From Cyanophora paradoxa CCMP329 (Eukaryota; Plantae; Glaucophyta), in contig QPMI01000163.1 of assembly GCA_004431415.1 (NCBI GenBank), positions 1 through 64,000 on the forward strand: a stretch of 64,000 nucleotides of DNA, given 5' to 3'. The position numbers and the translations under genes were made by a program. Under the pieces are notes generated by a model that was given only the letters and a program-made list of their open reading frames with translations, searched no databases and was not told the origin of the DNA. Below, piece by piece: positions 2,439 through 51,539 of the stretch. The first letter of the stretch is position 1; each line of letters opens with the position of its first letter.

Positions 2439-2451
2439 TCCAAGGTTAACG

Positions 2452-2456
2452 TACTA
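2452..2456. mobile_element. Probable transposon excision footprint TA-C-TA
   Basis: Copy 1 reads gttaacg TA C TA cgtaaacag where copy 2 reads gttaacg TA [GAG...16.3 kb...CTC] TA cggtaaacag. Confidence 0.7.
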
Positions 2457-7137: not shown

Positions 7138-7581
7138 GGCGGCAAGCTAGCAAGCAGATCTAGAATGAATTGCAGTCGTTGACTGAGGCCAATAGCGCTA
7201 CTGGACGCATGGTTGGGAAGCAGACATGCGGCCCGCTGAACTCAAGTCTCAAGGGGCCGGCTCAGGTCAACAAGCTTAGCTATGGCCAAATCTCGTCAAG
7301 GAAGTGCAAGGCTGGCGCCCGGTGCTATCGCTGCTCCTCAAACTGCGAACGAAGCTGCTCTTCGGGCTGGGGTACCGCACGGCGCAGCTCAGCTGTTTGT
7401 TGTTTAGTCTTCGATTCAGCGCAGCTAGGCCGCAGCTAGACGCGTCGCAGGCCGTGTCACGATGCAGCATAGCCCCGACACGTGCGCCGCATTCGCCGGC
7501 GTCGGCGCGCTGAACCCGGCACGCGCGCCGACGAGCTCCGAGCCTGCGCCGCGATCCATCTGCAGCGTCGCTCCACGCGCC

Positions 7582-8601
7582 ATGGCCAGCGCGGCACCGT
7601 CAGCAGCGCGGGGTTTCATCGCCCTGCGGGTCGCGCCGCGAGTCGCGCCGCGAGTCGTGCGGCCCGTACGAGTACCGACCCGTTTCCAATGGTGGCATCA
7701 AGAGCGGTCGAGCACCCGCCGGTCGTGTCGCTGCGGGCAAGAAGCGGCGGCGACGGGGCGCTGCAGGGCGGGTCCGGCGCCGGGGCCAAGCGGCGTGCCG
7801 GACGCGCTGCGGGAAGTGGTGGAAGTCAGCGACGAGGAGGGTTTCCGCCTGGGGCTCGCCCCGCTGCCGTGCACGGTCGAGCGGGAGGTGCCCGCCCAGG
7901 CGCTCGCCCCGGAGCTTGGCGCGGAGGCGCGCTTCGTGCTGCTGCGGCCCGTCTCGCGGGTCGCCGAGGTCTACGCCCTCCTCGGGGGCGACGAGGGCGA
8001 CGCCGAGCTCGTCGACGGTCCGCCCCGCCCACCCTGCCCCCTGCCCCTGCCCCTGCCTGGCCGCGCCGGCCGACGCAGGGGGCGGCAGTGGCGGACGAGC
8101 TGATGGGCGAGATCGCGCCGCTGGCGAACGCCGTCCTCTGGGCGCGTCACGGCGCCCGCTTCGCCCGCACCGCCATCGTCCCCACCATCCTCGGCCCGCC
8201 CCCGCGCCCCGCCCGGCCCCGCGCAGCGTCGCGAACTGCGGCAGCTGAGGCGGGGGGGCGCAGGGCGGCTGGGGCGCGGGGCGGGGGGCCGGGTGCTGGC
8301 GGAGGGCGGGGCGGGGGACGGGGAGGAGCACGCGCACGTGGCGAGCTTCGAGCACTCCGTCTCCGGCGTGCACGTGGCGCGTCCCCTGCCGGGCCGAGCC
8401 GGCGGCTGCGGGGCTAATTACGAGCAGCCGGGGGACGATGGCCAGCCGATGGAGGTCCACGTCCTCGCGCCCCTCGCCGCCCCCTGGCTCTACGGCGCCC
8501 GGCCCCGCCCCGGCGGCCCCGTCCGCCTCCTCAGCCCCGCCGAGTACCGCGCCCACGGCCCCGCCCTCGAGGCGCACCTCTTTCCCCCGCCGGACGCCTG
8601 A
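7582..8601 (+). CDS. DUF3727-family protein of cyanobacterial type with putative plastid transit peptide, copy 1
   Basis: VSDEEG..LPCTVERE..FVLLRPV..EVYA..ANAVL..ARTAIVPTILG..HVASFEH..LAPLAAP..RLLSPAEY..GPALEAHL matches recalled DUF3727 motifs; Ser/Ala/Arg-rich N-terminus MASAAPSAARGFIALR. Confidence 0.75.
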
Positions 8602-9003
8602 GGCCTGGCCGGGGGGCCTCGGAGGGCCCCGCGCCTGCCCCAACGCCTCACCGCCACCCCCATGGCCCGCTGCAGCTGAGCGTCGCGTCACTCCGGCATG
8701 GACCCCCAAGCGCTTCCAACAGCATATGCGCTCGCATATGCATGCTCGCGTCTTCGGCCGTTTCGGTGCCGGGCGGGACGCACCGGCGAGGAGCGGCCGC
8801 GGCTGCAGCAGGACCCGAGGACCGAGGCCGAGGGAAGGATGCTTTCCGCGAGCGCAAACGCAAGGCTGCAGCTGGGGAGGCGTTGAGGCGTTGAGGCGTT
8901 GAGGCGTTGGAAGCGGGGATTCGGGAAGGCTTGAAGGGCTCCGACTTCAAGCCTTGCGAGGTCCGAACCCCCCCCCCCCCCTCGCGATTCCAAGGTTAAC
9001 GTA

Positions 9004-12000
9004 GAGCCTTCTCATCGCTTCGGCGATCGCTAGGCCCTGGTACCGAGTACTCCGGGGCGATCGCTAGCGCGAACCGTCGGACGACGGACGCGGCGCCGGC
9101 GATCGCTTGAAAAAGGCCCCGGCCCGATCCGAGCCCATGGCCGGCGGGCATAGTGAACATAGTGCCAAAACGTCGCCCCGAAATCACGGTTTTTAGAAGG
9201 ATCGGAAGAAAGCGCGCCCAGGCAGGTCCGAGGGGCGGTTCCGGGACGGACCTACTGGCTCAGAGCTGCTTGCGCTGGGCCCGCCGGGCGACGCCATAGT
9301 TGAGAGCTCGAGTCCCTGCGTGCCGCCTTACAGCTGCCGAGGATGGGGCGACGGCTGCAGAATTCGAAGATGAGTACCTCGGACAAGCGAAAGCGTGTAG
9401 CTAGCGCGCCGCCGGCGCCGCGGGTGAGCCGATGAAGCAAGCGATGTGTACTCCTCGCGTGCACGGGCGCGGCGAAGACGCCTGCGGGGCGGGCGTGGCG
9501 CCGCGGGGCTGAGCACGGCGTGCGCGCGGACAGTGCGCATGCGCAGCGGACGGAATTCGCGCGCTGCATGCATGGCCGGGCGCGCGGAAGTTCCTTTTTT
9601 TTCCTATTCTTCCCCCTGCGCTTCTCCCCCCTGTTCATTCCCCCTAAGCTAGCCACCGGTGGCTAACTTGCGATCGAAGGGTACAGAGTTCGGCCTCGTG
9701 AAATTGATCTCATACAAAACCAACGATGTCGTAGAACCCTAGACTATAGCTGCATGCGGAATCAGGCTATCTGCAGTCCTACAAAAGCCTTGCACAGCTG
9801 CAGTAGCCCTTTTGCCTGCTCTTCGTTCGCGAAGATGTCAGGACGCCCCGCGCGGGGCGCGCGGAACCACTCTGTGGACGCGACCACAAATGGTGCGCAT
9901 GCTGTCGGATCGCGCAGGTGGTGGCCACTGCACACCACCCGACCCCAGCGCGCGCAGGGAGAACAGGACCTCCAGGACCCGGTCGACCCAACACTTCGCT
10001 TTGAATGTAGACCCGGCGGTCGTGCCCAGCCCGTTGTTACTTTTGCGAGCGTCTCGACTCGAGCGCCACCTAACAGCATATTGAGAGCAGAATCGCAAGA
10101 TAAGTTGCAGTAAGAAACGCACCGAGCTCAAGAATTGCAATTGCTTCAAAGCATTGAGCTCGTCCAGGGTCCGATCCCGGCAGTCAGGGGCGGGAGCTCG
10201 ACGCTGGCGGCCGGCTCGTCGTCGTCGAAGAGGGGCCGCCTGTGTAGGGCGGCCCAGCCCCTGGCGCCCTGTGAACGAAGAAGCAAAGGAGAGAGCCGCT
10301 CAGGACTCGGAAAGTAAAGAAGCTCAGAGGAAAGACGCTCGCCTTGTCGGAGTCCCGCCCCTCCCCCGCACCCCGGAGTCGGGCTTGACGTTGTAGTTCT
10401 CGAGGAGGGGGCGGACGGCGCCGGGGTACATGAGGACCGCCTGCCGCAGGAGGGCGGCGGCAAGGGCCGCGGCAGAGGGCGGGGCGGCGCCGGCGAGGCG
10501 GGGTCCAGCGTGTGCGAGAAGAGGCGCCGGAGGACCTGCCGCGCTTCAGTCTTAGAGGAGATTCGGAGGGGCGCAGGGCACCGGCTCGTCGACGGGCGCG
10601 GCGCCGCCGTCCCGCGCCACGCGCATGAGCGCGTACGCTGCGAGCCCGGCTCGGCGCCAGGAAAAAAGGGGGGAGAGGCTAAGTGGGGGTACCCGAGGAG
10701 TTGAGGGCGATGGGGAGGAAGAGGGGCGGCTCCCGCCTCGAGAGGGGCGGCTCCCGCACGAACGAGGCGGAGCGCCCGGGGAGCGCCGGCGCCGCCACCA
10801 GCTCCAGAAGGAACTTGTACTCCCTGAAGAAAAATGAGGTGGGGGGGGGGAAGTTGGGGGGGGGAAGGTTATGGGGTACCTGGCGCGGAGGGCGAAGTAG
10901 TCGATGCACTGGAGCACCCCCATCAGGTCACTGTCGGGGTCCAGCGCAAGCAGCAGCTTGGCCGTCTCTGGAGGTACGACGTTCGGTTCGAATCCGAGTA
11001 GGGGGGAAGCGGTCGAGGGGTACCGAGGGAGGTGCGGGAGCAGCCGCCGCGAATGAGCATCTGCAGGCGCCGGAAGACCAGGCCCTGGGGGGTGGCGGGG
11101 TGAGTCCGGAGGAGGGTACAGGTTATCCTCGGGGGTACAACGGGTTCTCTGCGCACTTGTTCTCCATGACTGCGAAGTCAAGGCGGCAGGCGCCGCTCGC
11201 CGGCTTGAACTGCGGGTGCCTGCCGGGGACGGAGCTCAAAACCAAGTGAACGAACTGCGGCGCAACGCATCCTCCACCCCGCCGCGCCCGTGCCCGCGCC
11301 CCGCCCCGCACCAGGCTGCCTCGAGGCAGTAGAGGGCGCGGTCGAGGAGCTCGGTCGCCGCGTCCAGCTCGCCGCTGTACTTGTAGATCTGAGGCCGGCC
11401 CGCCGGCTTCAGGCCCCCGGGCCAGGCTTCGTGTGCTCGGGGGTTCGTGTGCTCGGGGGAGGGGCGGGCCCGGGGCCCGGGGCAGGGCCGGGGGAGGGCG
11501 GGGCCAGGGGAGGGCGGGCCGGGGCCCGGGCGGGCGGGGGAGGGGCACGCCCGGGCCCGGGGCGGGGCCGGGGGAGGGGCGGGGCCGGGGGGAGAGGCGG
11601 GGCTGGGGAGAGGGGCGGGGCCGGGGGAGGGGCGGGGCCGGGGGAGGCGGAAGGGCGGGGGCGGGGCCCTCCGAAGAGGGCTGGGAGAGGGGAAGGAGGT
11701 CCACGTCCTCTCTTCCCCCCGAAGAGGGCACTCCGGGGGTAGGGAGGTCCGCCTCCTCTCTCCGGGGGTCAGCATGCTGCGGAGACGGGCATAAGACACC
11801 GAAAACCAGCGATCGCTTGGCCAATGAGAAGGCTGTGGACGTCAAGCCCGCGGCGACCGTTAGAACTGAGAACACAGAAGCGATCGCCGGCCCAGCAGCT
11901 CTTTGTTAGAGATCGGATCCGCTGGGTATGGCGCCGAACACAAAGCGATCGCCGAGCAATGAGAAGGCTCTATGCGCGGGGCAGAGATGTAGCGATCGCA

Positions 12001-15000
12001 TTGAATAGAGAATCTCTATGCGAGCATGCCCACAGCGCTACGGGAGGCGGGCACGCACTGCAGGCGTTGGCGTTGGCTGGTGCGACGAACTTGAAGCAGC
12101 TCCTGCGCAAGCGATCGCCGGTCAGCTCTGAGCCTTCTCATCGCTTCGGCGATCGCTAGGCCCTGGTACCGAGTACTCCGGGGCGATCGCTAGCGCGAAC
12201 CGTCGGACGACGGACGCGGCGCCGGCGATCGCTTGAAAAAGGCCCCGGCCCGATCCGAGCCCATGGCCGGCGGGCATAGTGAACATAGTGCCAAAACGTC
12301 GCCCCGAAATCACGGTTTTTAGAAGGATCGGAAGAAAGCGCGCCCAGGCAGGTCCGAGGGGCGGTTCCGGGACGGACCTACTGGCTCAGAGCTGCTTGCG
12401 CTGGGCCCGCCGGGCGACGCCATAGTTGAGAGCTCGAGTCCCTGCGTGCCGCCTTACAGCTGCCGAGGATGGGGCGACGGCTGCAGAATTCGAAGATGAG
12501 TACCTCGGACAAGCGAAAGCGTGTAGCTAGCGCGCCGCCGGCGCCGCGGGTGAGCCGATGAAGCAAGCGATGTGTACTCCTCGCGTGCACGGGCGCGGCG
12601 AAGACGCCTGCGGGGCGGGCGTGGCGCCGCGGGGCTGAGCACGGCGTGCGCGCGGACAGTGCGCATGCGCAGCGGACGGAATTCGCGCGCTGCATGCATG
12701 GCCGGGCGCGCGGAAGTTCCTTTTTTTTCCTATTCTTCCCCCTGCGCTTCTCCCCCTGTTCATTCCCCCTAAGCTAGCCACCGGTGGCTAACTTGCGATC
12801 GAAGGGTACAGAGTTCGGCCTCGTGAAATTGATCTCATACAAAACCAACGATGTCGTAGAACCCTAGACTATAGCTGCATGCGGAATCAGGCTATCTGCA
12901 GTCCTACAAAAGCCTTGCACAGCTGCAGTAGCCCTTTTGCCTGCTCTTCGTTCGCGAAGATGTCAGGACGCCCCGCGCGGGGCGCGCGGAACCACTCTGT
13001 GGACGCGACCACAAATGGTGCGCATGCTGTCGGATCGCGCAGGTGGTGGCCACTGCACACCACCCGACCCAGCGCGCGCAGGGAGAACAGGACCTCCAGG
13101 ACCCGGTCGACCCAACACTTCGCTTTGAATGTAGACCCGGCGGTCGTGCCCAGCCCGTTGTTACTTTTGCGAGCGTCTCGACTCGAGCGCCACCTAACAG
13201 CATATTGAGAGCAGAATCGCAAGATAAGTTGCAGTAAGAAACGCACCGAGCTCAAGAATTGCAATTGCTTCAAAGCATTGAGCTCGTCCAGGGTCCGATC
13301 CCGGCAGTCAGGGGCGGGAGCTCGACGCTGGCGGCCGGCTCGTCGTCGTCGAAGAGGGGCCGCCTGTGTAGGGCGGCCCAGCCCCTGGCGCCCTGTGAAC
13401 GAAGAAGCAAAGGAGAGAGCCGCTCAGGACTCGGAAAGTAAAGAAGCTCAGAGGAAAGACGCTCGCCTTGTCGGAGTCCCGCCCCTCCCCGCACCCCGGA
13501 GTCGGGCTTGACGTTGTAGTTCTCGAGGAGGGGGCGGACGGCGCCGGGGTACATGAGGACCGCCTGCCGCAGGAGGGCGGCGGCAAGGGCCGCGGCAGAG
13601 GGCGGGGGCGGCGCCGGCGAGGCGGGGTCCAGCGTGTGCGAGAAGAGGCGCCGGAGGACCTGCCGCGCTTCAGTCTTAGAGGAGATTCGGAGGGGCGCAG
13701 GGCACCGGCTCGTCGACGGGCGCGGCGCCGCCGTCCCGCGCCACGCGCATGAGCGCGTACGCTGCGAGCCCGGCTCGGCGCCAGGAAAAAAGGGGGGAGA
13801 GGCTAAGTGGGGGTACCCGAGGAGTTGAGGGCGATGGGGAGGAAGAGGGGCGGCTCCCGCCTCGAGAGGGGCGGCTCCCGCACGAACGAGGCGGAGCGCC
13901 CGGGGAGCGCCGGCGCCGCCACCAGCTCCAGAAGGAACTTGTACTCCCTGAAGAAAAATGAGGTGGGGGGGGGGGGAAGTTGGGGGGGGGAAGGTTATGG
14001 GGTACCTGGCGCGGAGGGCGAAGTAGTCGATGCACTGGAGCACCCCCATCAGGTCACTGTCGGGGTCCAGCGCAAGCAGCAGCTTGGCCGTCTCTGGAGG
14101 TACGACGTTCGGTTCGAATCCGAGTAGGGGGGAAGCGGTCGAGGGGGTACCGAGGGAGGTGCGGGAGCAGCCGCCGCGAATGAGCATCTGCAGGCGCCGG
14201 AAGACCAGGCCCTGGGGGTGGCGGGGTGAGTCCGGAGGAGGGTACAGGTTATCCTCGGGGGTACAACGGGTTCTCTGCGCACTTGTTCTCCATGACTGCG
14301 AAGTCAAGGCGGCAGGCGCCGCTCGCCGGCTTGAACTGCGGGTGCCTGCCGGGGACGGAGCTCAAAACCAAGTGAACGAACTGCGGCGCAACGCATCCTC
14401 CACCCCGCCGCGCCCGTGCCCGCGCCCCGCCCCGCACCAGGCTGCCTCGAGGCAGTAGAGGGCGCGGTCGAGGAGCTCGGTCGCCGCGTCCAGCTCGCCG
14501 CTGTACTTGTAGATCTGAGGCCGGCCCGCCGGCTTCAGGCCCCGGGCCAGGCTTCGTGTGCTCGGGGTTCGTGTGCTCGGGGGAGGGCGGGCCCGGGGCC
14601 CGGGGCAGGGCCGGGGGAGGGGCGGGGCCAGGGGAGGGGCGGGCCCGGGGCCCGGGGCGGGGCCGGGGGGAGGGGCACGCCCGGGGCCCGGGCGGGCCGG
14701 GGGAGGGGCGGGCCGGGGGGAGAGGCGGGGCTGGGGAGAGGGGCGGGGCCGGGGGGAGGGGCGGGGCCGGGGGGAGGCGGAAGGGCGGGGGCGGGGCCCT
14801 CCGAAGAGGGGCTGGGAGAGGGGAAGGAGGTCCACGTCCTCTCTTCCCCCCCGAAGAGGGCACTCCGGGGGGTAGGGAGGTCCGCCTCCTCTCTCCGGGG
14901 GTCAGCATGCTGCGGAGACGGGCATAAGACACCGAAAACCAGCGATCGCTTGGCCAATGAGAAGGCTGTGGACGTCAAGCCCGCGGCGACCGTTAGAACT

Positions 15001-18000
15001 GAGAACACAGAAGCGATCGCCGGCCCAGCAGCTCTTTGTTAGAGATCGGATCCGCTGGGTATGGCGCCGAACACAAAGCGATCGCCGAGCAATGAGAAGG
15101 CTCTATGCGCGGGGCAGAGATGTAGCGATCGCATTGAATAGAGAATCTCTATGCGAGCATGCCCACAGCGCTACGGGAGGCGGGCACGCACTGCAGGCGT
15201 TGGCGTTGGCTGGTGCGACGAACTTGAAGCAGCTCCTGCGCAAGCGATCGCCGGTCAGAGAGCCTTCTCATCGCTTCGGCGATCGCTAGGCCCTGGTACC
15301 GAGTACTCCGGGGCGATCGCTAGCGCGAACCGTCGGACGACGGACGCGGCGCCGGCGATCGCTTGAAAAAGGCCCCGGCCCGATCCGAGCCCATGGCCGG
15401 CGGGCATAGTGAACATAGTGCCAAAACGTCGCCCCGAAATCACGGTTTTTAGAAGGATCGGAAGAAAGCGCGCCCAGGCAGGTCCGAGGGGCGGTTCCGG
15501 GACGGACCTACTGGCTCAGAGCTGCTTGCGCTGGGCCGCCGGGCGACGCCATAGTTGAGAGCTCGAGTCCCTGCGTGCCGCCTTACAGCTGCCGAGGATG
15601 GGGCGACGGCTGCAGAATTCGAAGATGAGTACCTCGGACAAGCGAAAGCGTGTAGCTAGCGCGCCGCCGGCGCCGCGGGTGAGCCGATGAAGCAAGCGAT
15701 GTGTACTCCTCGCGTGCACGGGCGCGGCGAAGACGCCTGCGGGGCGGGCGTGGCGCCGCGGGGCTGAGCACGGCGTGCGCGCGGACAGTGCGCATGCGCA
15801 GCGGACGGAATTCGCGCGCTGCATGCATGGCCGGGCGCGCGGAAGTTCCTTTTTTTTCCTATTCTTCCCCCCTGCGCTTCTCCCCCCTGTTCATTCCCCC
15901 CTAAGCTAGCCACCGGTGGCTAACTTGCGATCGAAGGGTACAGAGTTCGGCCTCGTGAAATTGATCTCATACAAAACCAACGATGTCGTAGAACCCTAGA
16001 CTATAGCTGCATGCGGAATCAGGCTATCTGCAGTCCTACAAAAGCCTTGCACAGCTGCAGTAGCCCTTTTGCCTGCTCTTCGTTCGCGAAGATGTCAGGA
16101 CGCCCCGCGCGGGGCGCGCGGAACCACTCTGTGGACGCGACCACAAATGGTGCGCATGCTGTCGGATCGCGCAGGTGGTGGCCACTGCACACCACCGACC
16201 CCAGCGCGCGCAGGGAGAACAGGACCTCCAGGACCCGGTCGACCCAACACTTCGCTTTGAATGTAGACCCGGCGGTCGTGCCCAGCCCGTTGTTACTTTT
16301 GCGAGCGTCTCGACTCGAGCGCCACCTAACAGCATATTGAGAGCAGAATCGCAAGATAAGTTGCAGTAAGAAACGCACCGAGCTCAAGAATTGCAATTGC
16401 TTCAAAGCATTGAGCTCGTCCAGGGTCCGATCCCGGCAGTCAGGGGCGGGAGCTCGACGCTGGCGGCCGGCTCGTCGTCGTCGAAGAGGGGCCGCCTGTG
16501 TAGGGCGGCCCAGCCCCTGGCGCCCTGTGAACGAAGAAGCAAAGGAGAGAGCCGCTCAGGACTCGGAAAGTAAAGAAGCTCAGAGGAAAGACGCTCGCCT
16601 TGTCGGAGTCCCGCCCCTCCCCCGCACCCCGGAGTCGGGCTTGACGTTGTAGTTCTCGAGGAGGGGGCGGACGGCGCCGGGGTACATGAGGACCGCCTGC
16701 CGCAGGAGGGCGGCGGCAAGGGCCGCGGCAGAGGGCGGGGGCGGCGCCGGCGAGGCGGGGTCCAGCGTGTGCGAGAAGAGGCGCCGGAGGACCTGCCGCG
16801 CTTCAGTCTTAGAGGAGATTCGGAGGGGCGCAGGGCACCGGCTCGTCGACGGGCGCGGCGCCGCCGTCCCGCGCCACGCGCATGAGCGCGTACGCTGCGA
16901 GCCCGGCTCGGCGCCAGGAAAAAAGGGGGGAGAGGCTAAGTGGGGGTACCCGAGGAGTTGAGGGCGATGGGGAGGAAGAGGGGCGGCTCCCGCCTCGAGA
17001 GGGGCGGCTCCCGCACGAACGAGGCGGAGCGCCCGGGGAGCGCCGGCGCCGCCACCAGCTCCAGAAGGAACTTGTACTCCCTGAAGAAAAATGAGGTGGG
17101 GGGGGGGAAGTTGGGGGGGGGAAGGTTATGGGGTACCTGGCGCGGAGGGCGAAGTAGTCGATGCACTGGAGCACCCCCATCAGGTCACTGTCGGGGTCCA
17201 GCGCAAGCAGCAGCTTGGCCGTCTCTGGAGGTACGACGTTCGGTTCGAATCCGAGTAGGGGGGAAGCGGTCGAGGGGGTACCGAGGGAGGTGCGGGAGCA
17301 GCCGCCGCGAATGAGCATCTGCAGGCGCCGGAAGACCAGGCCCTGGGGGGTGGCGGGGTGAGTCCGGAGGAGGGTACAGGTTATCCTCGGGGGTACAACG
17401 GGTTCTCTGCGCACTTGTTCTCCATGACTGCGAAGTCAAGGCGGCAGGCGCCGCTCGCCGGCTTGAACTGCGGGTGCCTGCCGGGGACGGAGCTCAAAAC
17501 CAAGTGAACGAACTGCGGCGCAACGCATCCTCCACCCCGCCGCGCCCGTGCCCGCGCCCCGCCCCGCACCAGGCTGCCTCGAGGCAGTAGAGGGCGCGGT
17601 CGAGGAGCTCGGTCGCCGCGTCCAGCTCGCCGCTGTACTTGTAGATCTGAGGCCGGCCCGCCGGCTTCAGGCCCCCGGGCCAGGCTTCGTGTGCTCGGGG
17701 GTTCGTGTGCTCGGGGGAGGGGCGGGCCCGGGCCCGGGGCAGGGCCGGGGGAGGGGCGGGGCCAGGGGGAGGGCGGGCCCGGGGCCCGGGGCGGGCCGGG
17801 GGGAGGGCACGCCCGGGCCCGGGGCGGGGCCGGGGGAGGGGCGGGGCCGGGGGGAGAGGCGGGGCTGGGAGAGGGGCGGGGCCGGGGGAGGGGCGGGGCC
17901 GGGGGAGGCGGAAGGGCGGGGCGGGGCCCTCCGAAGAGGGGCTGGGAGAGGGGAAGGAGGTCCACGTCCTCTCTTCCCCCCGAAGAGGGCACTCCGGGGG

Positions 18001-21000
18001 GTAGGGAGGTCCGCCTCCTCTCTCCGGGGTCAGCATGCTGCGGAGACGGGCATAAGACACCGAAAACCAGCGATCGCTTGGCCAATGAGAAGGCTGTGGA
18101 CGTCAAGCCCGCGGCGACCGTTAGAACTGAGAACACAGAAGCGATCGCCGGCCCAGCAGCTCTTTGTTAGAGATCGGATCCGCTGGGTATGGCGCCGAAC
18201 ACAAAGCGATCGCCGAGCAATGAGAAGGCTCTATGCGCGGGGCAGAGATGTAGCGATCGCATTGAATAGAGAATCTCTATGCGAGCATGCCCACAGCGCT
18301 ACGGGAGGCGGGCACGCACTGCAGGCGTTGGCGTTGGCTGGTGCGACGAACTTGAAGCAGCTCCTGCGCAAGCGATCGCCGGTCAGAGAGCCTTCTCATC
18401 GCTTCGGCGATCGCTAGGCCCTGGTACCGAGTACTCCGGGGCGATCGCTAGCGCGAACCGTCGGACGACGGACGCGGCGCCGGCGATCGCTTGAAAAAGG
18501 CCCCGGCCCGATCCGAGCCCATGGCCGGCGGGCATAGTGAACATAGTGCCAAAACGTCGCCCCGAAATCACGGTTTTTAGAAGGATCGGAAGAAAGCGCG
18601 CCCAGGCAGGTCCGAGGGGCGGTTCCGGGACGGACCTACTGGCTCAGAGCTGCTTGCGCTGGGCCCGCCGGGCGACGCCATAGTTGAGAGCTCGAGTCCC
18701 TGCGTGCCGCCTTACAGCTGCCGAGGATGGGGCGACGGCTGCAGAATTCGAAGATGAGTACCTCGGACAAGCGAAAGCGTGTAGCTAGCGCGCCGCCGGC
18801 GCCGCGGGTGAGCCGATGAAGCAAGCGATGTGTACTCCTCGCGTGCACGGGCGCGGCGAAGACGCCTGCGGGGCGGGCGTGGCGCCGCGGGGCTGAGCAC
18901 GGCGTGCGCGCGGACAGTGCGCATGCGCAGCGGACGGAATTCGCGCGCTGCATGCATGGCCGGGCGCGCGGAAGTTCCTTTTTTTTCCTATTCTTCCCCC
19001 TGCGCTTCTCCCCCTGTTCATTCCCCCTAAGCTAGCCACCGGTGGCTAACTTGCGATCGAAGGGTACAGAGTTCGGCCTCGTGAAATTGATCTCATACAA
19101 AACCAACGATGTCGTAGAACCCTAGACTATAGCTGCATGCGGAATCAGGCTATCTGCAGTCCTACAAAAGCCTTGCACAGCTGCAGTAGCCCTTTTGCCT
19201 GCTCTTCGTTCGCGAAGATGTCAGGACGCCCCGCGCGGGGCGCGCGGAACCACTCTGTGGACGCGACCACAAATGGTGCGCATGCTGTCGGATCGCGCAG
19301 GTGGTGGCCACTGCACACCACCCGACCCCAGCGCGCGCAGGGAGAACAGGACCTCCAGGACCCGGTCGACCCAACACTTCGCTTTGAATGTAGACCCGGC
19401 GGTCGTGCCCAGCCCGTTGTTACTTTTGCGAGCGTCTCGACTCGAGCGCCACCTAACAGCATATTGAGAGCAGAATCGCAAGATAAGTTGCAGTAAGAAA
19501 CGCACCGAGCTCAAGAATTGCAATTGCTTCAAAGCATTGAGCTCGTCCAGGGTCCGATCCCGGCAGTCAGGGGCGGGAGCTCGACGCTGGCGGCCGGCTC
19601 GTCGTCGTCGAAGAGGGCCGCCTGTGTAGGGCGGCCCAGCCCCTGGCGCCCTGTGAACGAAGAAGCAAAGGAGAGAGCCGCTCAGGACTCGGAAAGTAAA
19701 GAAGCTCAGAGGAAAGACGCTCGCCTTGTCGGAGTCCCGCCCCTCCCCGCACCCCGGAGTCGGGCTTGACGTTGTAGTTCTCGAGGAGGGGGCGGACGGC
19801 GCCGGGGTACATGAGGACCGCCTGCCGCAGGAGGGCGGCGGCAAGGGCCGCGGCAGAGGGCGGGGGCGGCGCCGGCGAGGCGGGGTCCAGCGTGTGCGAG
19901 AAGAGGCGCCGGAGGACCTGCCGCGCTTCAGTCTTAGAGGAGATTCGGAGGGGCGCAGGGCACCGGCTCGTCGACGGGCGCGGCGCCGCCGTCCCGCGCC
20001 ACGCGCATGAGCGCGTACGCTGCGAGCCCGGCTCGGCGCCAGGAAAAAAGGGGGAGAGGCTAAGTGGGGGTACCCGAGGAGTTGAGGGCGATGGGGAGGA
20101 AGAGGGGCGGCTCCCGCCTCGAGAGGGCGGCTCCCGCACGAACGAGGCGGAGCGCCCGGGGAGCGCCGGCGCCGCCACCAGCTCCAGAAGGAACTTGTAC
20201 TCCCTGAAGAAAAATGAGGTGGGGGGGGGGAAGTTGGGGGGGGGAAGGTTATGGGGTACCTGGCGCGGAGGGCGAAGTAGTCGATGCACTGGAGCACCCC
20301 ATCAGGTCACTGTCGGGGTCCAGCGCAAGCAGCAGCTTGGCCGTCTCTGGAGGTACGACGTTCGGTTCGAATCCGAGTAGGGGGGAAGCGGTCGAGGGGT
20401 ACCGAGGGAGGTGCGGGAGCAGCCGCCGCGAATGAGCATCTGCAGGCGCCGGAAGACCAGGCCCTGGGGGGTGGCGGGGTGAGTCCGGAGGAGGGTACAG
20501 GTTATCCTCGGGGGTACAACGGGTTCTCTGCGCACTTGTTCTCCATGACTGCGAAGTCAAGGCGGCAGGCGCCGCTCGCCGGCTTGAACTGCGGGTGCCT
20601 GCCGGGGACGGAGCTCAAAACCAAGTGAACGAACTGCGGCGCAACGCATCCTCCACCCCGCCGCGCCCGTGCCCGCGCCCCGCCCCGCACCAGGCTGCCT
20701 CGAGGCAGTAGAGGGCGCGGTCGAGGAGCTCGGTCGCCGCGTCCAGCTCGCCGCTGTACTTGTAGATCTGAGGCCGGCCCGCCGGCTTCAGGCCCCCGGG
20801 CCAGGCTTCGTGTGCTCGGGGTTCGTGTGCTCGGGGGAGGGCGGGCCCGGGGCCCGGGGCAGGGCCGGGGGAGGGGCGGGGCCAGGGGAGGGCGGGCCCG
20901 GGGCCCGGGCGGGGCCGGGGGAGGGGCACGCCCGGGGCCGGGCGGGGCCGGGGGAGGGGCGGGCCGGGGGGAGAGGCGGGGCTGGGGAGAGGGCGGGGCC

Positions 21001-24000
21001 GGGGGAGGGCGGGGCCGGGGGAGGCGGAAGGGCGGGGGCGGGGCCCTCCGAAGAGGGGCTGGGAGAGGGAAGGAGGTCCACGTCCTCTCTTCCCCCCCGA
21101 AGAGGGCACTCCGGGGGGTAGGGAGGTCCGCCTCCTCTCTCCGGGGGTCAGCATGCTGCGGAGACGGGCATAAGACACCGAAAACCAGCGATCGCTTGGC
21201 CAATGAGAAGGCTGTGGACGTCAAGCCGCGGCGACCGTTAGAACTGAGAACACAGAAGCGATCGCCGGCCCAGCAGCTCTTTGTTAGAGATCGGATCCGC
21301 TGGGTATGGCGCCGAACACAAAGCGATCGCCGAGCAATGAGAAGGCTCTATGCGCGGGGCAGAGATGTAGCGATCGCATTGAATAGAGAATCTCTATGCG
21401 AGCATGCCACAGCGCTACGGGAGGCGGGCACGCACTGCAGGCGTTGGCGTTGGCTGGTGCGACGAACTTGAAGCAGCTCCTGCGCAAGCGATCGCCGGTC
21501 AGAGAGCCTTCTCATCGCTTCGGCGATCGCTAGGCCTGGTACCGAGTACTCCGGGGCGATCGCTAGCGCGAACCGTCGGACGACGGACGCGGCGCCGGCG
21601 ATCGCTTGAAAAAGGCCCCGGCCCGATCCGAGCCCATGGCCGGCGGGCATAGTGAACATAGTGCCAAAACGTCGCCCCGAAATCACGGTTTTTAGAAGGA
21701 TCGGAAGAAAGCGCGCCCAGGCAGGTCCGAGGGGCGGTTCCGGGACGGACCTACTGGCTCAGAGCTGCTTGCGCTGGGCCCGCCGGGCGACGCCATAGTT
21801 GAGAGCTCGAGTCCCTGCGTGCCGCCTTACAGCTGCCGAGGATGGGGCGACGGCTGCAGAATTCGAAGATGAGTACCTCGGACAAGCGAAAGCGTGTAGC
21901 TAGCGCGCCGCCGGCGCCGCGGGTGAGCCGATGAAGCAAGCGATGTGTACTCCTCGCGTGCACGGGCGCGGCGAAGACGCCTGCGGGGCGGCGTGGCGCC
22001 GCGGGCTGAGCACGGCGTGCGCGCGGACAGTGCGCATGCGCAGCGGACGGAATTCGCGCGCTGCATGCATGGCCGGGCGCGCGGAAGTTCCTTTTTTTTC
22101 CTATTCTTCCCCCTGCGCTTCTCCCCCCTGTTCATTCCCCCTAAGCTAGCCACCGGTGGCTAACTTGCGATCGAAGGGTACAGAGTTCGGCCTCGTGAAA
22201 TTGATCTCATACAAAACCAACGATGTCGTAGAACCCTAGACTATAGCTGCATGCGGAATCAGGCTATCTGCAGTCCTACAAAAGCCTTGCACAGCTGCAG
22301 TAGCCCTTTTGCCTGCTCTTCGTTCGCGAAGATGTCAGGACGCCCGCGCGGGGCGCGCGGAACCACTCTGTGGACGCGACCACAAATGGTGCGCATGCTG
22401 TCGGATCGCGCAGGTGGTGGCCACTGCACACCACCCGACCCAGCGCGCGCAGGGAGAACAGGACCTCCAGGACCCGGTCGACCCAACACTTCGCTTTGAA
22501 TGTAGACCCGGCGGTCGTGCCCAGCCCGTTGTTACTTTTGCGAGCGTCTCGACTCGAGCGCCACCTAACAGCATATTGAGAGCAGAATCGCAAGATAAGT
22601 TGCAGTAAGAAACGCACCGAGCTCAAGAATTGCAATTGCTTCAAAGCATTGAGCTCGTCCAGGGTCGATCCCGGCAGTCAGGGGCGGGAGCTCGACGCTG
22701 GCGGCCGGCTCGTCGTCGTCGAAGAGGGGCCGCCTGTGTAGGGCGGCCCAGCCCCTGGCGCCCTGTGAACGAAGAAGCAAAGGAGAGAGCCGCTCAGGAC
22801 TCGGAAAGTAAAGAAGCTCAGAGGAAAGACGCTCGCCTTGTCGGAGTCCCGCCCCTCCCCCGCACCCGGAGTCGGGCTTGACGTTGTAGTTCTCGAGGAG
22901 GGGGCGGACGGCGCCGGGGTACATGAGGACCGCCTGCCGCAGGAGGGCGGCGGCAAGGGCCGCGGCAGAGGGCGGGGGCGGTGCCGGCGAGGCGGGGTCC
23001 AGCGTGTGCGAGAAGAGGCGCCGGAGGACCTGCCGCGCTTCAGTCTTAGAGGAGATTCGGAGGGCGCAGGGCACCGGCTCGTCGACGGGCGCGGCGCCGC
23101 CGTCCCGCGCCACGCGCATGAGCGCGTACGCTGCGAGCCCGGCTCGGCGCCAGGAAAAAGGGGGGAGAGGCTAAGTGGGGGTACCCGAGGAGTTGAGGGC
23201 GATGGGAGGAAGAGGGGCGGCTCCCGCCTCGAGAGGGGCGGCTCCCGCACGAACGAGGCGGAGCGCCCGGGGAGCGCCGGCGCCGCCACCAGCTCCAGAA
23301 GGAACTTGTACTCCCTGAAGAAAAATGAGGTGGGGGGGGGGAAGTTGGGGGGGGGAAGGTTATGGGGTACCTGGCGCGGAGGGCGAAGTAGTCGATGCAC
23401 TGGAGCACCCCATCAGGTCACTGTCGGGGTCCAGCGCAAGCAGCAGCTTGGCCGTCTCTGGAGGTACGACGTTCGGTTCGAATCCGAGTAGGGGGAAGCG
23501 GTCGAGGGGTACCGAGGGAGGTGCGGGAGCAGCCGCGCGAATGAGCATCTGCAGGCGCCGGAAGACCAGGCCTGGGGGTGGCGGGGTGAGTCCGGAGGAG
23601 GTACAGGTTATCCTCGGGGTACAACGGGTTCTCTGCGCACTTGTTCTCCATGACTGCGAAGTCAGGCGGCAGGCGCCGCTCGCCGGCTTGAACTGCGGGT
23701 GCCTGCCGGGGACGGAGCTCAAAACCAAGTGAACGAACTGCGGCGCAACGCATCCTCCACCCCGCCGCGCCCGTGCCCGCGCCCCGCCCGCACCAGGCTG
23801 CCTCGAGGCAGTAGAGGGCGCGGTCGAGGAGCTCGGTCGCCGCGTCCAGCTCGCCGCTGTACTTGTAGATCTGAGGCCGGCCGCCGGCTTCAGGCCCCCG
23901 GGCCAGGCTTCGTGTGCTCGGGGTTCGTGTGCTCGGGGAGGGCGGGCCCGGGGCCGGGGCAGGGCCGGGGGAGGGCGGGCCAGGGGAGGGCGGGCCCGGG

Positions 24001-25318
24001 CCGGGGCGGGCCGGGGGAGGGGCACGCCGGGGCCGGGGCGGGGCCGGGGAGGGGCGGGCGGGGGGAGAGGCGGGGCTGGGGAGGGGCGGGGCCGGGGGAG
24101 GGGCGGGGCCGGGGGAGGCGAAGGGCGGGGGCGGGCCCTCCGAAGAGGGGCTGGGAGAGGGGAAGGAGGTCCACGTCCTCTCTTCCCCCCGAAGAGGGCA
24201 CTCCGGGGGTAGGGAGGTCCGCCTCCTCTCTCCGGGGGTCAGCATGCTGCGGAGACGGGCATAAGACACCGAAAACCAGCGATCGCTTGGCCAATGAGAA
24301 GGCTGTGGACGTCAAGCCCGCGGCGACCGTTAGAACTGAGAACACAGAAGCGATCGCCGGCCCAGCAGCTCTTTGTTAGAGATCGGATCCGCTGGGTATG
24401 GCGCCGAACACAAAGCGATCGCCGAGCAATGAGAAGGCTCTATGCGCGGGCAGAGATGTAGCGATCGCATTGAATAGAGAATCTCTATGCGAGCATGCCC
24501 ACAGCGCTACGGGAGGCGGGCACGCACTGCAGGCGTTGGCGTTGGCTGGTGCGACGAACTTGAAGCAGCTCCTGCGCAAGCGATCGCCGGTCAGAGAGCC
24601 TTCTCATCGCTTCGGCGATCGCTAGGCCCTGGTACGAGTACTCCGGGCGATCGCTAGCGCGAACCGTCGGACGACGGACGCGGCGCGGCGATCGCTTGAA
24701 AAAGGCCCCGGCCCGATCCGAGCCCATGGCCGGCGGGCATAGTGAACATAGTGCCAAAACGTCGCCCCGAAATCACGGTTTTTAGAAGGATCGGAAGAAA
24801 GCGCGCCCAGGCAGGTCCGAGGGGCGGTTCCGGGACGGACCTACTGGCTCAGAGCTGCTTGCGCTGGGCCCGCCGGGCGACGCCATAGTTGAGAGCTCGA
24901 GTCCCTGCGTGCCGCCTTACAGCTGCCGAGGATGGGGCGACGGCTGCAGAATTCGAAGATGAGTACCTCGGACAAGCGAAAGCGTGTAGCTAGCGCGCCG
25001 CCGGCGCCGCGGGTGTGGGCTGCCGCGGGATCGCATTGAATAGAGAATCTCTATGCGAGCATGCCCACAGCGCTACGGGAGGCGGGCACGCACTGCAGGC
25101 GTTGGCGTTGGCTGGTGCGACGAACTTGAAGCAGCTCCTGCGCAAGCGATCGCCGGTCAGATGCGCGGGGCAGAGATGTAGCGATCGCATTGAATAGAGA
25201 ATCTCTATGCGAGCATGCCCACAGCGCTACGGGAGGCGGGCACGCACTGCAGGCGTTGGCGTTGGCTGGTGCGACGAACTTGAAGCAGCTCCTGCGCAAG
25301 CGATCGCCGGTCAGACTC
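9004..25318. mobile_element. Head-to-tail array of a ~3.13-kb non-autonomous, TA-flanked TIR DNA element (units start 9004, 12130, 15260, 18388, 21504; partial unit 24596-25015; extra terminal modules 25029-25318)
   Basis: Left end GAGCCTTCTCATCGCTTCGGCGATCGCT (9004-9031) is the inverse of AGCGATCGCCGAGCAATGAGAAGGCTC (11944-11970); TA on both outer sides (9002-3, 25319-20); repeated subterminal GCGATCGC; no transposase ORF seen. Confidence 0.85.
10185..11720 (-). pseudogene. TCF25: Captured, intron-containing internal fragment of TCF25/Rqc1; repeated in each full unit (~13310-14840, 16440-17970, 19570-21080, 22680-24185)
   Basis: YSGELDAATELLDRALYCLEAAW|HPQFKPASGACRLDFAVMENK|..VFRRLQMLIRGGCSRTSL|ETAKLLLALDPDSDLMGVLQCIDYFALRAR|EYKFLLEL..LLRQAVLMYPGAVRPLL follows the TCF25 motif series; no start, frame broken after ENK. 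Confidence 0.85.
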
Positions 25319-25909
25319 TACGGTAAACAGCGCCTATTAAATTGGGTAAGTTGAGTGCAGCTTGAGCTTTCATGCTGGAGTGACGCGATGTTCAGACGTT
25401 TTTTTGCAGGCGCGCGCGTACCGGTACCGCGGCGTACGTACGTCTCGGAAGATGAAATTAAACAGCTAGAGCCTATATGATATATATAGTTATAGCTATA
25501 GCTAGAGCTTAAAATTAAATCTTGCGTGCATATATATACAATAATTATATACTTAAAGGCGCTTTTTATAATTGATTCGTGCGTTTTTAATTCAAAGAAA
25601 ATTCGGTCGGAAATCTGACCTTTTCAGACCTTTCGGGTTCGCACGTGCTAGTAATAGCTACCAGGTACCGGTGAAGCTTTCAAGTTTCCGGATCACGATC
25701 GCGATCGCCGAGTCGAGCGCGATCGCGAGCGTTAACCGTTAGATCGGAGACTGCAGCCTCGTGCACGATCATGATGACAGCAGCAGCGGACTCGTGCACG
25801 ATCAGCCTGCAGCCTGCAGGCTGCAGGCCGCAGTGCAGGCTAGCGCTATAGCGGCGCCCTCGTGCATGATCATGATCATGATCACTGCAGCGGACGCTAT
25901 CTTAGCTAG

Positions 25910-28900
25910 CTAGACGAGGAAGGTGCGGACGCCGGGCGGGGGCGCGTCGGGCGGCTCCTCGGGGGCGTGCCGCTGCAGCTCGAGCAGCGCCGCCGTCTGC
26001 TCGAGCAGCGTCACTGCGTCCCTCGCCCTCCCCTTGGCCCCGGCGGCGGGGGTGGCGCCCCGCCGTCGGCTTGAGCAGCTCGACCTCGGGCGCTGCGCGC
26101 TCCTGCTCGGGCCGCTCGCGACGCTCGGGCGCGCGCGGGGCGCCCTGCTTGGCGGGGAGCTTGAGCTTGGAGACCGTGGGGCGCGCGGTGCGGGCGCCCC
26201 CGCCGGCGTGGCCGCGCCTCAGGGCGCGGTAGAGGTCCTCGGCGCGGGCCTGGGGCGCGGCAGGCGTGAGGCGCGCGGGGCGGGGCGGGGCGGGGCGGCG
26301 GGGCGCGGGGGCGGGCCTCCCAGACGCTCGTGATGCCTTTGGAGACGGCGCTCGCCATCTCCACGATCTGCGCCCCCGCCGGGTCACACCGGCCGCCCCG
26401 CCCCGGCGTCCCGCACCGCGCACCTTGGCGGTAACGGAGGAGCGGCGGGGCGGGGCGGCGGCCGGTGGCGGGGCTCGGGGAGCCACCCTCGCTCCCTCGC
26501 TTCGTGCCGTCGAGCGCCCCGAGCGCGCCGTCGAGCGGCCGGTGCGGGCCGTCGGCGGCCCCGAGGCGGCCCCGAGCGCGCGAGGGGATCTCGACGCTGA
26601 GGCGCAGCGAGTGGCGCCGCCCGCCGGCTCCTCGCTGCGGCTGCGCCGGCGCTGCAGCAGGGCGCTCCCGCCGCCTCCCCATCGCCGCCCTCTGGCTCCT
26701 CGGCGGCGATACTGACGCGGCGGCGGCCGTGCGGCTGGCCGGCGAGCTCGGGGGCGCCCAGGGGCAGAGGGTGCGCCACCGAGGAGCGCCGGGGGGGCGC
26801 TGGGCGTGGGGGAGCCCTCGGGGAGGCCGAGCCGGCGTTCGCGGCGAGGAGGCTCGCGCGGCGAAAGGTGCGCCCCGCGGGCCGTGCAGCGCGTCCGCCG
26901 AGCGCTCCCGCTTGCGCCGCTCCTTCGCCACCAGCCGCGCCAGGCCGGCCCCGCGCCGCGCCCACCGCCCCGCCCCTCCTCCTCCTCCTCCTCGCTCTCG
27001 CTCTCGCTCTCCGCCGCTGCCGTCACCGCCGGCGCCAGCGCACGCCACAGCGCTGCCCGCTCCGCCGCCGCCGCCTCCGCCACTCGCCGCCCTCGGCCGC
27101 CGCCGCCTCCGCAGCGGCGGCGGCGGCGGCGGCCTTTGCCTTGGCGTCGGCCTCGGCTGCGGCGGCGTCGGCGGCGCGCTCGGCGTTGGCGGCTCGGTAG
27201 AGGCGCGTCGCGGAAAGGAGGCGGGAGGCGAGGAGGAGGGCGGGACCGGCCCCGCGAGCCCCCGCACCGCCCCGAGCAGCGCCGGCGCCCCAACGGGGGC
27301 CGGGCGGCCTCAGGGGCGGCGGGGGTGGGGAGGCCGCGCGGGCGGCGTCGAAGGCGGCTGCGAGGAAGAGGCCGACGTCGCGCACGTCCTCCTCGGGCCG
27401 CGGGCCCGCCCGCCGCCCCGCCGCCCCTCCGCGAACCACCGGCACACGAGCAGCACGTGCCAGAGCTCCCCCAGCAGCGGGCCCGGGCCCGTCGCCCACT
27501 CCGCCTGCTCCGCCGCCGCCGCCATGCGCGCCGCGATCGCCGTCTCGCTCGTGTGGCGGAGGCCGAGGGTGAGGGGCGGGGCGGGGGCGGCAGCGTGTGG
27601 AGCGGGGCGCGGGTGGCGAGGCGGAGGGACTCGACGAGGCGGGCGGCGGCGGGGGCGAGGCGCTCGGCGGCCTCGCGGGCGCGCTGCGGGAGGTTTGCCG
27701 CCGCGCGCCACTGCCGCTCCAGCGCCGCCACCTGCGCCCGCTCCTCCGCCCCCTGCCCGTGCCCTCCTCCTCCTTCTCCGTCTCCTTGGCCGCCGGCGCG
27801 GCGCCCCCCTCGAGGGCTCGGGCCCCGCGGGGCGCGCCAAGTGCACGTAGGCGAGGCTCGGCGCCGACGCCGCCGGGCGCAGCGCGCGGGAGGAGGAGGC
27901 CGCCGCCGCCGGCCCCCGCCGCCCCGGCGAGCTGCGGGCGGACGGGGCGGCAGCGAGGCCCCGGGCGGGAGTCACGGGCGGGCGCCCGCTGCAAGAGGTC
28001 GTGAGCGCACGAGGGCGTGCGGGGCGGGACGGCCGCACTGTGGGGGGGCGAGGGAGGTGCCCGAGGCGGAGCGGGGCGGGCGGCGCGCGGCGTCGGGCCC
28101 CGGGAAAAGATGAGCAGGGGCGGGGCGGGATCCGCGTCGGCGGGGGCGCCCCGGGCGGGAGGCAGCCGCCGCGCTCGAGGACGGCCGCCGCGCCGCCGGC
28201 CCGCGCCAGCAGCTGCGCCCGCCCCGACTGCCGCCCCGTCCCCGCCGAGAGCGGCCGTATCACCGGCCCCGGCGCCGGCGGGCGAGGGCTGGCCGCGCGA
28301 CGGCGCTGCCGGGGCGGTTCGTTCGGGGGCACTCCCCGGCGGTGCGTGCCGGCGGACCGGGCCGGGCGGAGGAGGGGCGGTAGAGGGGTGCCGGGGCGCG
28401 GGGGCGAGCGGGGCGGGAGCTGGGCGGGGTGGCCGCGAGGGAGGCGGCGAGGGTGGCGGGGGGCCGGCCCTTGGCGGGGGCGCGATGGCGGGCGGGAGGG
28501 GCAGCTTCAGCTTGAAGCCGGCGGCCGCTGCGGGGCGCGTGAGGGGCGCGGGGCGGCGGGGCGGGCGGGGGCGGCAGGCGGCACCGGATGCGACCTTCTG
28601 GCCGGGGAGGGCGTGCGGCCCGAGAGGCGACGGGGCCTCCCCCGCCACGGCGCCCCGGCCCTGCCGCCCCCATGCCGTCAGAGAGCGGGCGACGGGATCA
28701 GGGAAGCGGGGGCGCACAGAAGCAGCGGAGCGGGGTGCCGGCGGGAGCGCTCCCCGGGGAGCGGGGCGCTGGGGGCCGGTGTTGCGGCGAGGCGGTCGGC
28801 GGCGGCGGCGAGGAGGCGGAGGCGGGCGGGGTCGGGCGCTGCGCCGGCCCCGCCACAAGGGAGGCGCGCTTGGAGGCGACGCGGCTGAGGCCCCGGCTCG

Positions 28901-29984: not shown

Positions 29985-30428
29985 GGCGGCAAGCTAGCAA
30001 GCAGATCTAGAATGAATTGCAGTCGTTGACTGAGGCCAATAGCGCTACTGGACGCATGGTTGGGAAGCAGACATGCGGCCCGCTGAACTCAAGTCTCAAG
30101 GGGCCGGCTCAGGTCAACAAGCTTAGCTATGGCCAAATCTCGTCAAGGAAGTGCAAGGCTGGCGCCCGGTGCTATCGCTGCTCCTCAAACTGCGAACGAA
30201 GCTGCTCTTCGGGCTGGGGTACCGCACGGCGCAGCTCAGCTGTTTGTTGTTTAGTCTTCGATTCAGCGCAGCTAGGCCGCAGCTAGACGCGTCGCAGGCC
30301 GTGTCACGATGCAGCATAGCCCCGACACGTGCGCCGCATTCGCCGGCGTCGGCGCGCTGAACCCGGCACGCGCGCCGACGAGCTCCGAGCCTGCGCCGCG
30401 ATCCATCTGCAGCGTCGCTCCACGCGCC

Positions 30429-31445: not shown

Positions 31446-31613
31446 GGCCTGGCCGGGGGGCCTCGGAGGGCCCCGCGCCTGCCCCAACGCCTCACCGCCA
31501 CCCCCATGGCCCGCTGCAGCTGAGCGTCGCGTCACTCCGGCATGGACCCCCAAGCGCTTCCAACAGCGCCAACGAATTCGGGTAAAGCGGTCCGTTTTTT
31601 TCCGGAGTGTCCG

Positions 31614-50335: not shown

Positions 50336-51539
<1,204 letters not shown>

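Follow-up and report, generated by a model that had tools for sequence, protein, structure and literature searches.

A head-to-tail array of a mobile element carrying a TCF25 gene fragment in the glaucophyte Cyanophora paradoxa, with tentative affinity to Helitron2/Helentron elements

Helitrons and IS91 elements initiate transposition at a precise start and terminate it at a sloppy stop (PMC5148889; PMC3627910). In the Helitron2/HINE layout, a 5′ repeat lies 0–4 nt from the end and is accompanied by palindromic sub-terminal repeats, an internal microsatellite and a 3′ stem-loop, and both tandem copies and circles occur (PMC3627910, PMC4067079, PMC5148889). Bari1, a Tc1/mariner element of Drosophila, has been suggested to replicate from a circle in a rolling-circle mode (PMC5932611). 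Here we describe a ca. 16 kb head-to-tail array, defined by self-BLAST, repeat finding and multiple alignment, from the glaucophyte Cyanophora paradoxa CCMP329; it is contained in positions 1–64,000 of contig QPMI01000163.1 (assembly GCA_004431415.1), a 64,000 nt stretch that we call the window. Each unit of the array carries a fragment of the host gene TCF25, and our preferred, still tentative, reading is that a non-autonomous Helitron2/Helentron-like element was amplified by rolling circle, with the array as the resulting concatemer. Glaucophyte transposons are essentially undescribed. The 2019 genome paper of C. paradoxa reported 11.5% unknown repeats, 67.6% GC and a mean intron of 86 bp (PMC6704402), and the G+C content of the window (62–84%) and its introns of 46–92 nt agree with this published genome.

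Structure of the array, its unit and its insertion site

An earlier note on this DNA, made from the letters alone, described five units of about 3.13 kb and a partial sixth, which self-BLAST and multiple alignment bore out: the units start at positions 9004, 12130, 15260, 18388, 21504, and 24596, the full ones range from 3092 to 3130 bp, and the sixth comprises 420 nt (Table 1). The 5′ boundary is identical to the base at all six joints, and the 3′ side shows four different endings that vary by a few bases: GGTCAGA/GAGCC in four inner joints, GGTCAG-CTCT-GAGCC in the first joint, GGTCAGA/TGCGCGG in the joint between two tails, and GGTCAGA-CTCTACGG at the outer 3′ end. This combination of a precise 5′ start and a variable 3′ stop matches the Helitron/IS91 pattern (PMC5148889; PMC3627910). 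Likewise, the array closes at its 3′ edge with 5′-truncated pieces that have a common 3′ end; the two tails correspond to 133 nt (truncated) and 154 nt (full) of the unit end, and were retrieved by repeat finding as a period of 154 with 1.9 copies at 100%. At the breakpoint of the sixth unit, equivalent to position ~9423, further copies in the genome (Logan contigs) also have a deletion joint, indicating that 9004–9423 is a conserved 5′ domain. The units differ from each other by 7–18 substitutions, mostly in the G-rich minisatellite at 11454–11667, and by 20–44 gapped columns in the multiple alignment, nearly all of them 1-nt indels in homopolymers, which look like consensus noise from long reads.

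The inverted repeat begins at base 1 of each unit, and the first 27–28 nt have an inverted match in 11944–11970 with one mismatch and one gap. The 27/28-bp imperfect terminal inverted repeat (TIR) of the earlier note has, therefore, a real inverted partner, but its right arm is 158 bp internal. The ends are thus asymmetric, because the repeat is terminal at the left and internal at the right, and the tail beyond it is as abundant as the 5′ end. We consider that this tail belongs to the element, since it is co-amplified with the left end and forms the edge of the insertion when this is compared with the empty site (see below). The true ends of the unit share only AGAGC..GCTCT, of which 4–5 bases are terminal, and a displaced 11-nt motif, CGGCGATCGCT. 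The 27-nt left end occurs six times in the window, with none expected. Additionally, GGCGATCGCT occurs three times in the 105 nt next to the left end and its complement, AGCGATCGCC, three times in the 250 nt next to the right end, and the palindrome GCGATCGC is present eight times per unit, only at the ends, and 54 times in the window versus 5.1 expected. The 3′ module, consisting of a left-end-like inverted repeat, a spacer and a ..CAGCTCT motif, is found twice (11808–11902 and 11944–12129), and the right-hand region of the unit is an old internal duplication. The fold across the tail-to-head joint, where two 11-nt inverted motifs meet, is the sole one that beats shuffled sequences (z -2.8).

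Table 1. Features of the array, of its unit (positions in unit 1) and of the insertion site
Feature	Position	Strand	Remarks
Whole inserted array	9004–25317	+	Five full units, truncated sixth unit and extra 3′ tails; absent from the paralogous joint 2453/2454
Unit 1	9004–12129	+	3126 bp; sole unit ending in ..GGTCAG+CTCT ahead of the next unit
Units 2–5	12130–24595	+	3130, 3128, 3116 and 3092 bp; 3′ end ..GGTCAGA, with the next 5′ end directly after
Truncated sixth unit	24596–25015	+	5′ terminal domain only
3′ edge of the array	25016–25316	+	13-nt filler, then 5′-truncated tail (25029–25161) and full tail (25162–25315/6)
5′ terminal inverted repeat	9004–9031	+	With the first of the GGCGATCGCT motifs and a small palindromic hairpin
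Family-wide conserved 5′ domain	9004–9423	+	GGCGATCGCT motifs at 9023, 9057 and 9099
Captured TCF25 gene fragment	10215–11460	-	At least 8 exons, 7 GT-AG introns of 46–92 nt
G-rich minisatellite	11454–11667	+	Periods of 17 nt and related lengths; immediately precedes the 3′ domain; units vary most here
Degenerate, older copy of the 3′ module	11808–11902	+	Second 5′-end-like inverted repeat and second ..CAGCTCT motif, from module alignment
Subterminal inverted partner of the 5′ end	11944–11970	-	158 bp inside the 3′ end; recurs in every unit
3′ tail	11972–12129	+	Hairpin with 6-bp stem (12006–12020), small GC hairpin ~20 nt from the end, terminal AGCGATCGCCGGTCAG motif
Tandem duplication, first copy	2176–8727	+	6.55 kb; the second copy (8728–9003 plus 25318–31567) hosts the array
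Paralogous uninterrupted (empty) site	2445–2465	.	..AACGTA/CTACGTAAAC..

As anticipated from the letters alone, the unit lacks a transposase and has host cargo. No transposase domain was found in its eight largest open reading frames (ORFs) with Pfam, and we did not find an ORF for a Rep (HUH) protein plus Pif1-like helicase in the unit or among the ORFs scanned in the window. Rfam and tRNA scans of the unit, as well as a protein search with a 111-aa ORF over its right end, produced no match. The cargo is a TCF25 fragment: a minus-strand ORF matches Pfam Tcf25 (PF04910, E 1.4e-5), the exon translations correspond to the conserved core of TCF25, and RNA-derived contigs from two runs skip seven short minus-strand GT-AG introns between 10268 and 11310. 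The cargo is transcribed and spliced. A spliced contig of 925 nt continues from the TCF25 exons across position 10215 into element-specific sequence, whereas another contig leaves the unit sequence at 10215; from this we infer that 10215 is the edge of the captured fragment and that the contig leaving there is a candidate for the parent gene. With its conserved ends, a captured intron-bearing fragment of a host gene and no transposase, the element conforms to the Pack-type family that the earlier note had envisaged.

The array is inserted in the second copy of a tandem duplication composed of blocks T (2176–2453 and 8728–9003) and X (2454–8723 and 25318–31567), whose two copies are separated by 11 substitutions and 41 indels, mostly of 1 nt. 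T and X are contiguous in the first copy, and in the second the array occupies exactly their joint, which reads ..AACGTA-array-CTCTACGGTAAAC... With 9004–25317 excised in silico, the sequence is that of the paralog apart from an additional CT dinucleotide and a single-nucleotide indel (G), the latter of the kind seen 41 times between the two X copies. There is no direct repeat of 8–11 bp flanking the array. The TA reported for both outer flanks is there (9002–9003 and 25319–25320, with the array taken as ending at 25318), but the inner joints contain neither a TA nor a copy of the flanking target, and the empty site already holds both TAs, as TA-C-TA, within the palindrome TTAA-CGTA-C-TACG-(G)TAAAC; a TA target duplication is therefore not demonstrated. 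At this one locus, the site parses equally as a duplication of TA, TAA, ACGT or ACGTA plus a footprint, or as no duplication. It is locally AT-rich, with the insertion joint A/C within the palindrome. Taken with the asymmetric repeat and the co-amplified tail, the TA-less inner joints and the pre-existing TAs leave the Tc1/mariner-like character that had been deduced from the TA and the TIR unsupported as stated.

Without the array, the filled copy reads GTA-C-TAC-G-GTA, an example of the pattern NNN-C-revcomp-G-NNN (revcomp, reverse complement), which occurs 23 times in the non-redundant window versus 5.1 expected; the spacer-less form XYZ-revcomp-XYZ occurs there 162 times versus 52 expected. 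Since the filled copy, too, has the palindrome, on the right-hand side of the element, excision of the array element did not create it; another, earlier transposon may have left it as a scar. Fourteen of the 23 occurrences are in the tract 32043–32795, 750 bp that are dense in short self-complementary words and look like accumulated excision footprints or templated micro-insertions.

Abundance of the element and its presence in independent assemblies

Copy number was estimated from Logan contigs of four public runs, including X1 (2024) and X2 (2019), as sums of contig k-mer depths, which are rough. Block X, with two copies here, has depths of 107 (X1) and 53 (X2), giving a baseline of ~54 and 27 per single copy, which fits the depths of block T (three copies; 146 and 70). 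The left end of the element reaches 42,650 and 14,100 and the tail 44,900 and 12,200, and thus both termini exist elsewhere in the genome in hundreds of copies by contig depth; for the 5′ domain 9004–9423 the summed depth is ~20,000–42,000 versus ~107 for the flanking two-copy DNA. The TCF25 interior is less abundant, at 1,080–1,730 in X1 (~20–32 copies) and 290–330 in X2 (~11–12 copies). The tail-to-head joint (12125 to 9003) is present in the four runs, with depths of 8,059 in X1 and 3,124 in X2, equivalent to ~100–150 copies.

Protein searches, done with single exon-bearing ORFs whose exons were left unjoined, retrieved 15 gene models of C. paradoxa from EukProt, 13 of them with PF04910; the parent TCF25 gene at full length, which falls beyond the length range of these searches, was not among the matches. 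Seven of these genes, from g18617 to g18632, occupy every second or third gene position in tig00000215; two (g2936 and g2937) are in tig00000663, two adjacent ones (g15311/2) in tig00020908, and one (g24281) in tig00000344. Most of the models start with a peptide from the minus strand of the left end, followed by the tail peptide and then by TCF25 exons, indicating that these models from the 2019 PacBio assembly cross the tail-to-head joint. Contig tig00000663 also contains PRP17, and therefore g2936 and g2937 correspond to the locus in the window. Conversely, g18623, g18629, and g18632 include 60–80 residues that are not encoded in any frame of the window, and the array in tig00000215 is most likely a second locus, or alternatively could be a haplotig. 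Twelve genes in the 2019 assembly agree with the interior-copy estimate from X2. The roughly one dozen TCF25-like genes of the reference are chimeric models, annotation artefacts of the element; a practical consequence of the arrays is that spurious TCF25-like genes populate the reference annotation.

Given the many copies of the joint and the arrays seen on two or more contigs of another assembly, head-to-tail amplification looks like a trait of the family and not a one-off event. Within the window, a low-stringency BLAST of unit 1 against the remaining sequence produced only G-rich low-complexity matches and no further family member. The exact 27-mer of the left end had no match in JGI metagenomes. 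We also rejected putative metagenome relatives: a degenerate 18-base pattern gave at least 120 single matches in soil and bacterial contigs, and BLAST with both ends returned only a 27-nt chance match.

Rolling-circle amplification and competing explanations

In the rolling-circle reading, a trans-acting Rep/helicase would nick the exact 5′ end and peel off one strand; replication would often miss the 3′ stop and continue around a circular copy, and the outcome would be a head-to-tail multimer that integrates with no evident target duplication. The cargo of such elements is variable; here, a part of TCF25 would have been acquired at the DNA level, with its introns retained, and would now move with the element. 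We infer both the rolling-circle chemistry and the enzyme; the circular intermediate suggested in the earlier note is likewise reasonable to suppose, as a circle or as a concatemer. This reading, which we prefer although we give it slightly less than even odds, is supported by the asymmetric ends and the similar depth of tail and left end (44,900 vs. 42,650 in X1; 12,200 vs. 14,100 in X2), by the 5′-truncated pieces with a common 3′ end and the duplicated 3′ module, by a joint depth of 8,059 and 3,124 against ~54 and 27 per copy, by the 2019 models that cross the joint (seven in tig00000215 and two in tig00000663), and by the recovery of the paralog, with no clear duplicated target, when the array is removed. 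As in Helitron2/Helentron elements, the inverted repeat lies 0–4 nt from the 5′ end and includes a predicted hairpin (ATCGC-TTCG-GCGAT plus GCCT/AGGC), although this folds no better than shuffled sequences; at the 3′ end the repeat is subterminal and followed, 35 nt downstream, by a palindrome with a 6-bp stem, but it is located 158 nt from the end. Several observations weigh against this reading. No RepHel partner with matching ends was seen among the window ORFs scanned. The canonical features of Helitron1 (5′-TC, 3′-CTRR, and insertion at A/T) do not appear: the ends are GAGCC.. and ..GGTCAG(A), with flanks A and C, so that the element starts with G (or AG) instead of T or TC, and its target is A/C in a palindrome instead of TT or A/T. 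The 27-nt repeat and the 158-nt distance exceed the published 8–15 nt and 20–60 nt, hairpins other than that of the joint are indistinguishable from shuffles (z -0.06 to -0.5), and the depths are only rough sums. Finally, the oriented motif arrays (GGCGATCGCT three times at the left and its complement three times at the right) are more typical of binding sites for DDE transposases, and the flanks also parse as TA, TAA or ACGT(A) duplications with an empty-site footprint.

These last two observations would be expected from a cut-and-paste TIR element mobilized by a DDE transposase, be it Tc1/mariner-like with TA, PIF-like with TAA, or from an undescribed superfamily, an explanation that we consider possible but on balance unlikely. 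Here, the GGCGATCGCT motifs would be binding sites and a double insertion, or the re-insertion of a circle, would produce tandem copies; inner joints would lose terminal bases, unequal exchange would expand the array, and intact outermost ends would mobilize the composites. The opposite orientation of the motif arrays at the two ends, the short true terminal repeat with CGGCGATCGCT at both ends, the TA (or TAA, or ACGT) at both outer flanks and an empty site, TA-C-TA or ACGTA-CT-ACGTA, resembling a duplication plus footprint are all consistent with it. So is the full ..CTCT end, kept only by unit 1 and the outermost 3′ end and absent at the inner joints, as the joints of Bari1 and hobo arrays have also lost TIR bases (PMC5932611), and the internally deleted sixth unit with its filler DNA resembles an abortive gap repair. 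However, the long inverted repeat is not terminal at the right, the 3′ boundary varies and the 5′ boundary never does, the inner joints lack the target duplication that the double-insertion model predicts (PMC5932611), and the unit's eight largest ORFs yielded no transposase. Additionally, excision did not make the palindrome, as the filled copy already has it on the right of the element; the length of the target-site duplication is ambiguous, as 2, 3, 4 or 5 nt all fit, and one extra event is required compared to simple insertion (insertion, duplication of at least 9.7 kb, and then excision). An undescribed eukaryotic element that moves via a head-to-tail joint, as circle or dimer, and is neither a Helitron nor a classical DDE element appears improbable to us. 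It would be comparable to the (IS)2 intermediates of bacterial IS30/IS3-type elements or to a tyrosine or serine recombinase element; the joint is indeed abundant, it unites the two 11-nt inverted motifs in the only fold beating shuffles (z -2.8), and the termini fit no family tested. Nevertheless, no enzyme is known for such an element, the rolling-circle and cut-and-paste readings accommodate every feature, and cargo capture and duplication of the 3′ end are classic for rolling-circle elements. A further proposal, that the family is a novel type of DNA transposon in eukaryotes, perhaps specific to glaucophytes, which combines DDE-style oriented binding-site arrays and inverted repeats with obligatory intermediates in the form of a head-to-tail joint (circle or multimer), we regard as rather improbable; it could be either an undescribed superfamily or a strongly divergent lineage of Helitrons whose termini and target rule are new.

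The array could also be secondary to transposition. Thus, single copies might have moved by any mechanism and been multiplied later by replication slippage or unequal sister-chromatid exchange, which would agree with the near identity of the units, with the 6.55-kb tandem duplication in their own neighborhood, and with an interior copy number that differs about two- to three-fold between X1 and X2, as for unstable arrays. We find this quite improbable, as every joint is at the exact first base of the element, unlike random breakpoints, the ~100–150 copies of the joint greatly exceed the 11–32 copies of the interior, and the 2019 assembly has arrays of the same element on two or more contigs. 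Lastly, expansion of one unit by the assembler is highly improbable: the 1-nt homopolymer indels that dominate the differences between units are typical of long-read consensus noise, but the joint and the multi-copy depth appear in short-read runs made independently in 2019 and 2024 (the joint in all four Logan runs), multiple adjacent gene models of the 2019 PacBio assembly span the joint, and there are three distinct joint types and unit-specific variants of the minisatellite. The array is, accordingly, not the assembly expansion that the earlier note had allowed for.

Surroundings, significance and comparison with known systems

The duplicated block that hosts the array contains an expressed, spliced gene, with RNA contigs at 6553–6786 and 7044–7352, and a Pfam scan of the long ORFs from the 6.3-kb block X gave no match. 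Its two copies are joined by a short filler (8723–8728). An inverted repeat of ~390 bp (2034–2423 and 31621–32001, 86.5% identical), which includes a microsatellite of four GAGGCGTT repeats and a poly-C run, encloses the duplicated region and the array; its right arm is an inverted third copy of T, 86.5% identical, which closes the region. A possible kinship between block T (2176–2453) and the tail of the element, suggested by the common words GGCGTTG and CTTGAAG, was rejected because their local alignment was no better than shuffles. Farther downstream, the minus-strand PRP17 ORF (46868–47884) has exons 100% identical to EukProt tig00000663_g2951; its 3′ exons are separated by small in-frame, stop-free introns that result in a single 337-aa ORF, a trap for ORF-based annotation. 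The gene for Nup98-96 (Pfam matches at 53797–55170 and 56771–58768) is flanked by a 1.1-kb inverted repeat (50336–51431 and 60457–61558, 96.7% identical and ~9 kb apart), and nested minisatellites with periods of 12/24, 117/129, and 60 nt, the 60-mer repeated 15 times at 96%, extend from 62383 to the end of the window at 64000.

Tandem arrays of Helitrons and Helentrons, as well as gene capture, have been described before; new here are the ends, the target and the lineage of the host. The family is abundant, transcribed, and apparently amplified recently. Exons of the host are shuffled by it into transcripts that are chimeric and spliced, and it forms multi-kilobase arrays, with copy-number estimates that differ between the two DNA runs, providing a case for how whole transposons become tandem arrays, an open point in the origin of satellite DNA. 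If a Rep/helicase partner were found, Helitron2-type elements, with unusual ends, would be extended to the third lineage with primary plastids.

Among described systems, the dimers of transposable elements (TEs) generated by double insertion (hobo, P, R1; McGurk and Barbash 2018) are similar in their head-to-tail TE arrays and in a copy number that varies between strains; in contrast, a copy of the target site is missing from the five inner joints described here, and joint copies far exceed the interior of the element. Tc1/mariner elements, including Bari1 from Drosophila, share the TA beside the outer ends, an inverted repeat of ~27 bp, joints missing terminal bases and a partial last element. 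However, they have inverted repeats at both extremities, whereas in our element the right arm is internal and the tail is within the mobile unit; likewise, the empty site with two TAs, the captured-gene cargo, and the failure to see a DD(E/D) transposase set it apart. Pack-MULE and Pack-CACTA elements are comparable for their conserved ends around intron-bearing gene fragments, their chimeric spliced transcripts and their many copies, but this locus displays neither a target duplication of 9–11 bp or 3 bp nor the long TIRs of Mutator-like elements, and has asymmetric ends and head-to-tail arrays. One-ended transposition of IS91 and ISCR, which are bacterial, offers the same exact origin end, variable termination, and tandem multimers. 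The comparison that we prefer is with the non-autonomous Helitron2/Helentron elements (HINE, DINE-1, Helitron-1N/CRe from Chlamydomonas, and FoHeli from Fusarium), from which the array element deviates in the length of its repeat (27 nt, not 8–15) and the position of its 3′ repeat (158 nt from the end, not 20–60), in starting with G/AG instead of T, in its non-T-rich target, in its oriented GGCGATCGCT arrays, and in having no linked RepHel partner. Conversely, it shares with them asymmetric inverted repeats that are terminal at the 5′ side and subterminal at the 3′ side, palindromic repeats, an internal micro- or minisatellite, a predicted 3′ stem-loop region, and no coding capacity, together with tandem copies, joined ends, gene-fragment capture, and no clear target duplication (PMC3627910, PMC4067079, PMC5148889).

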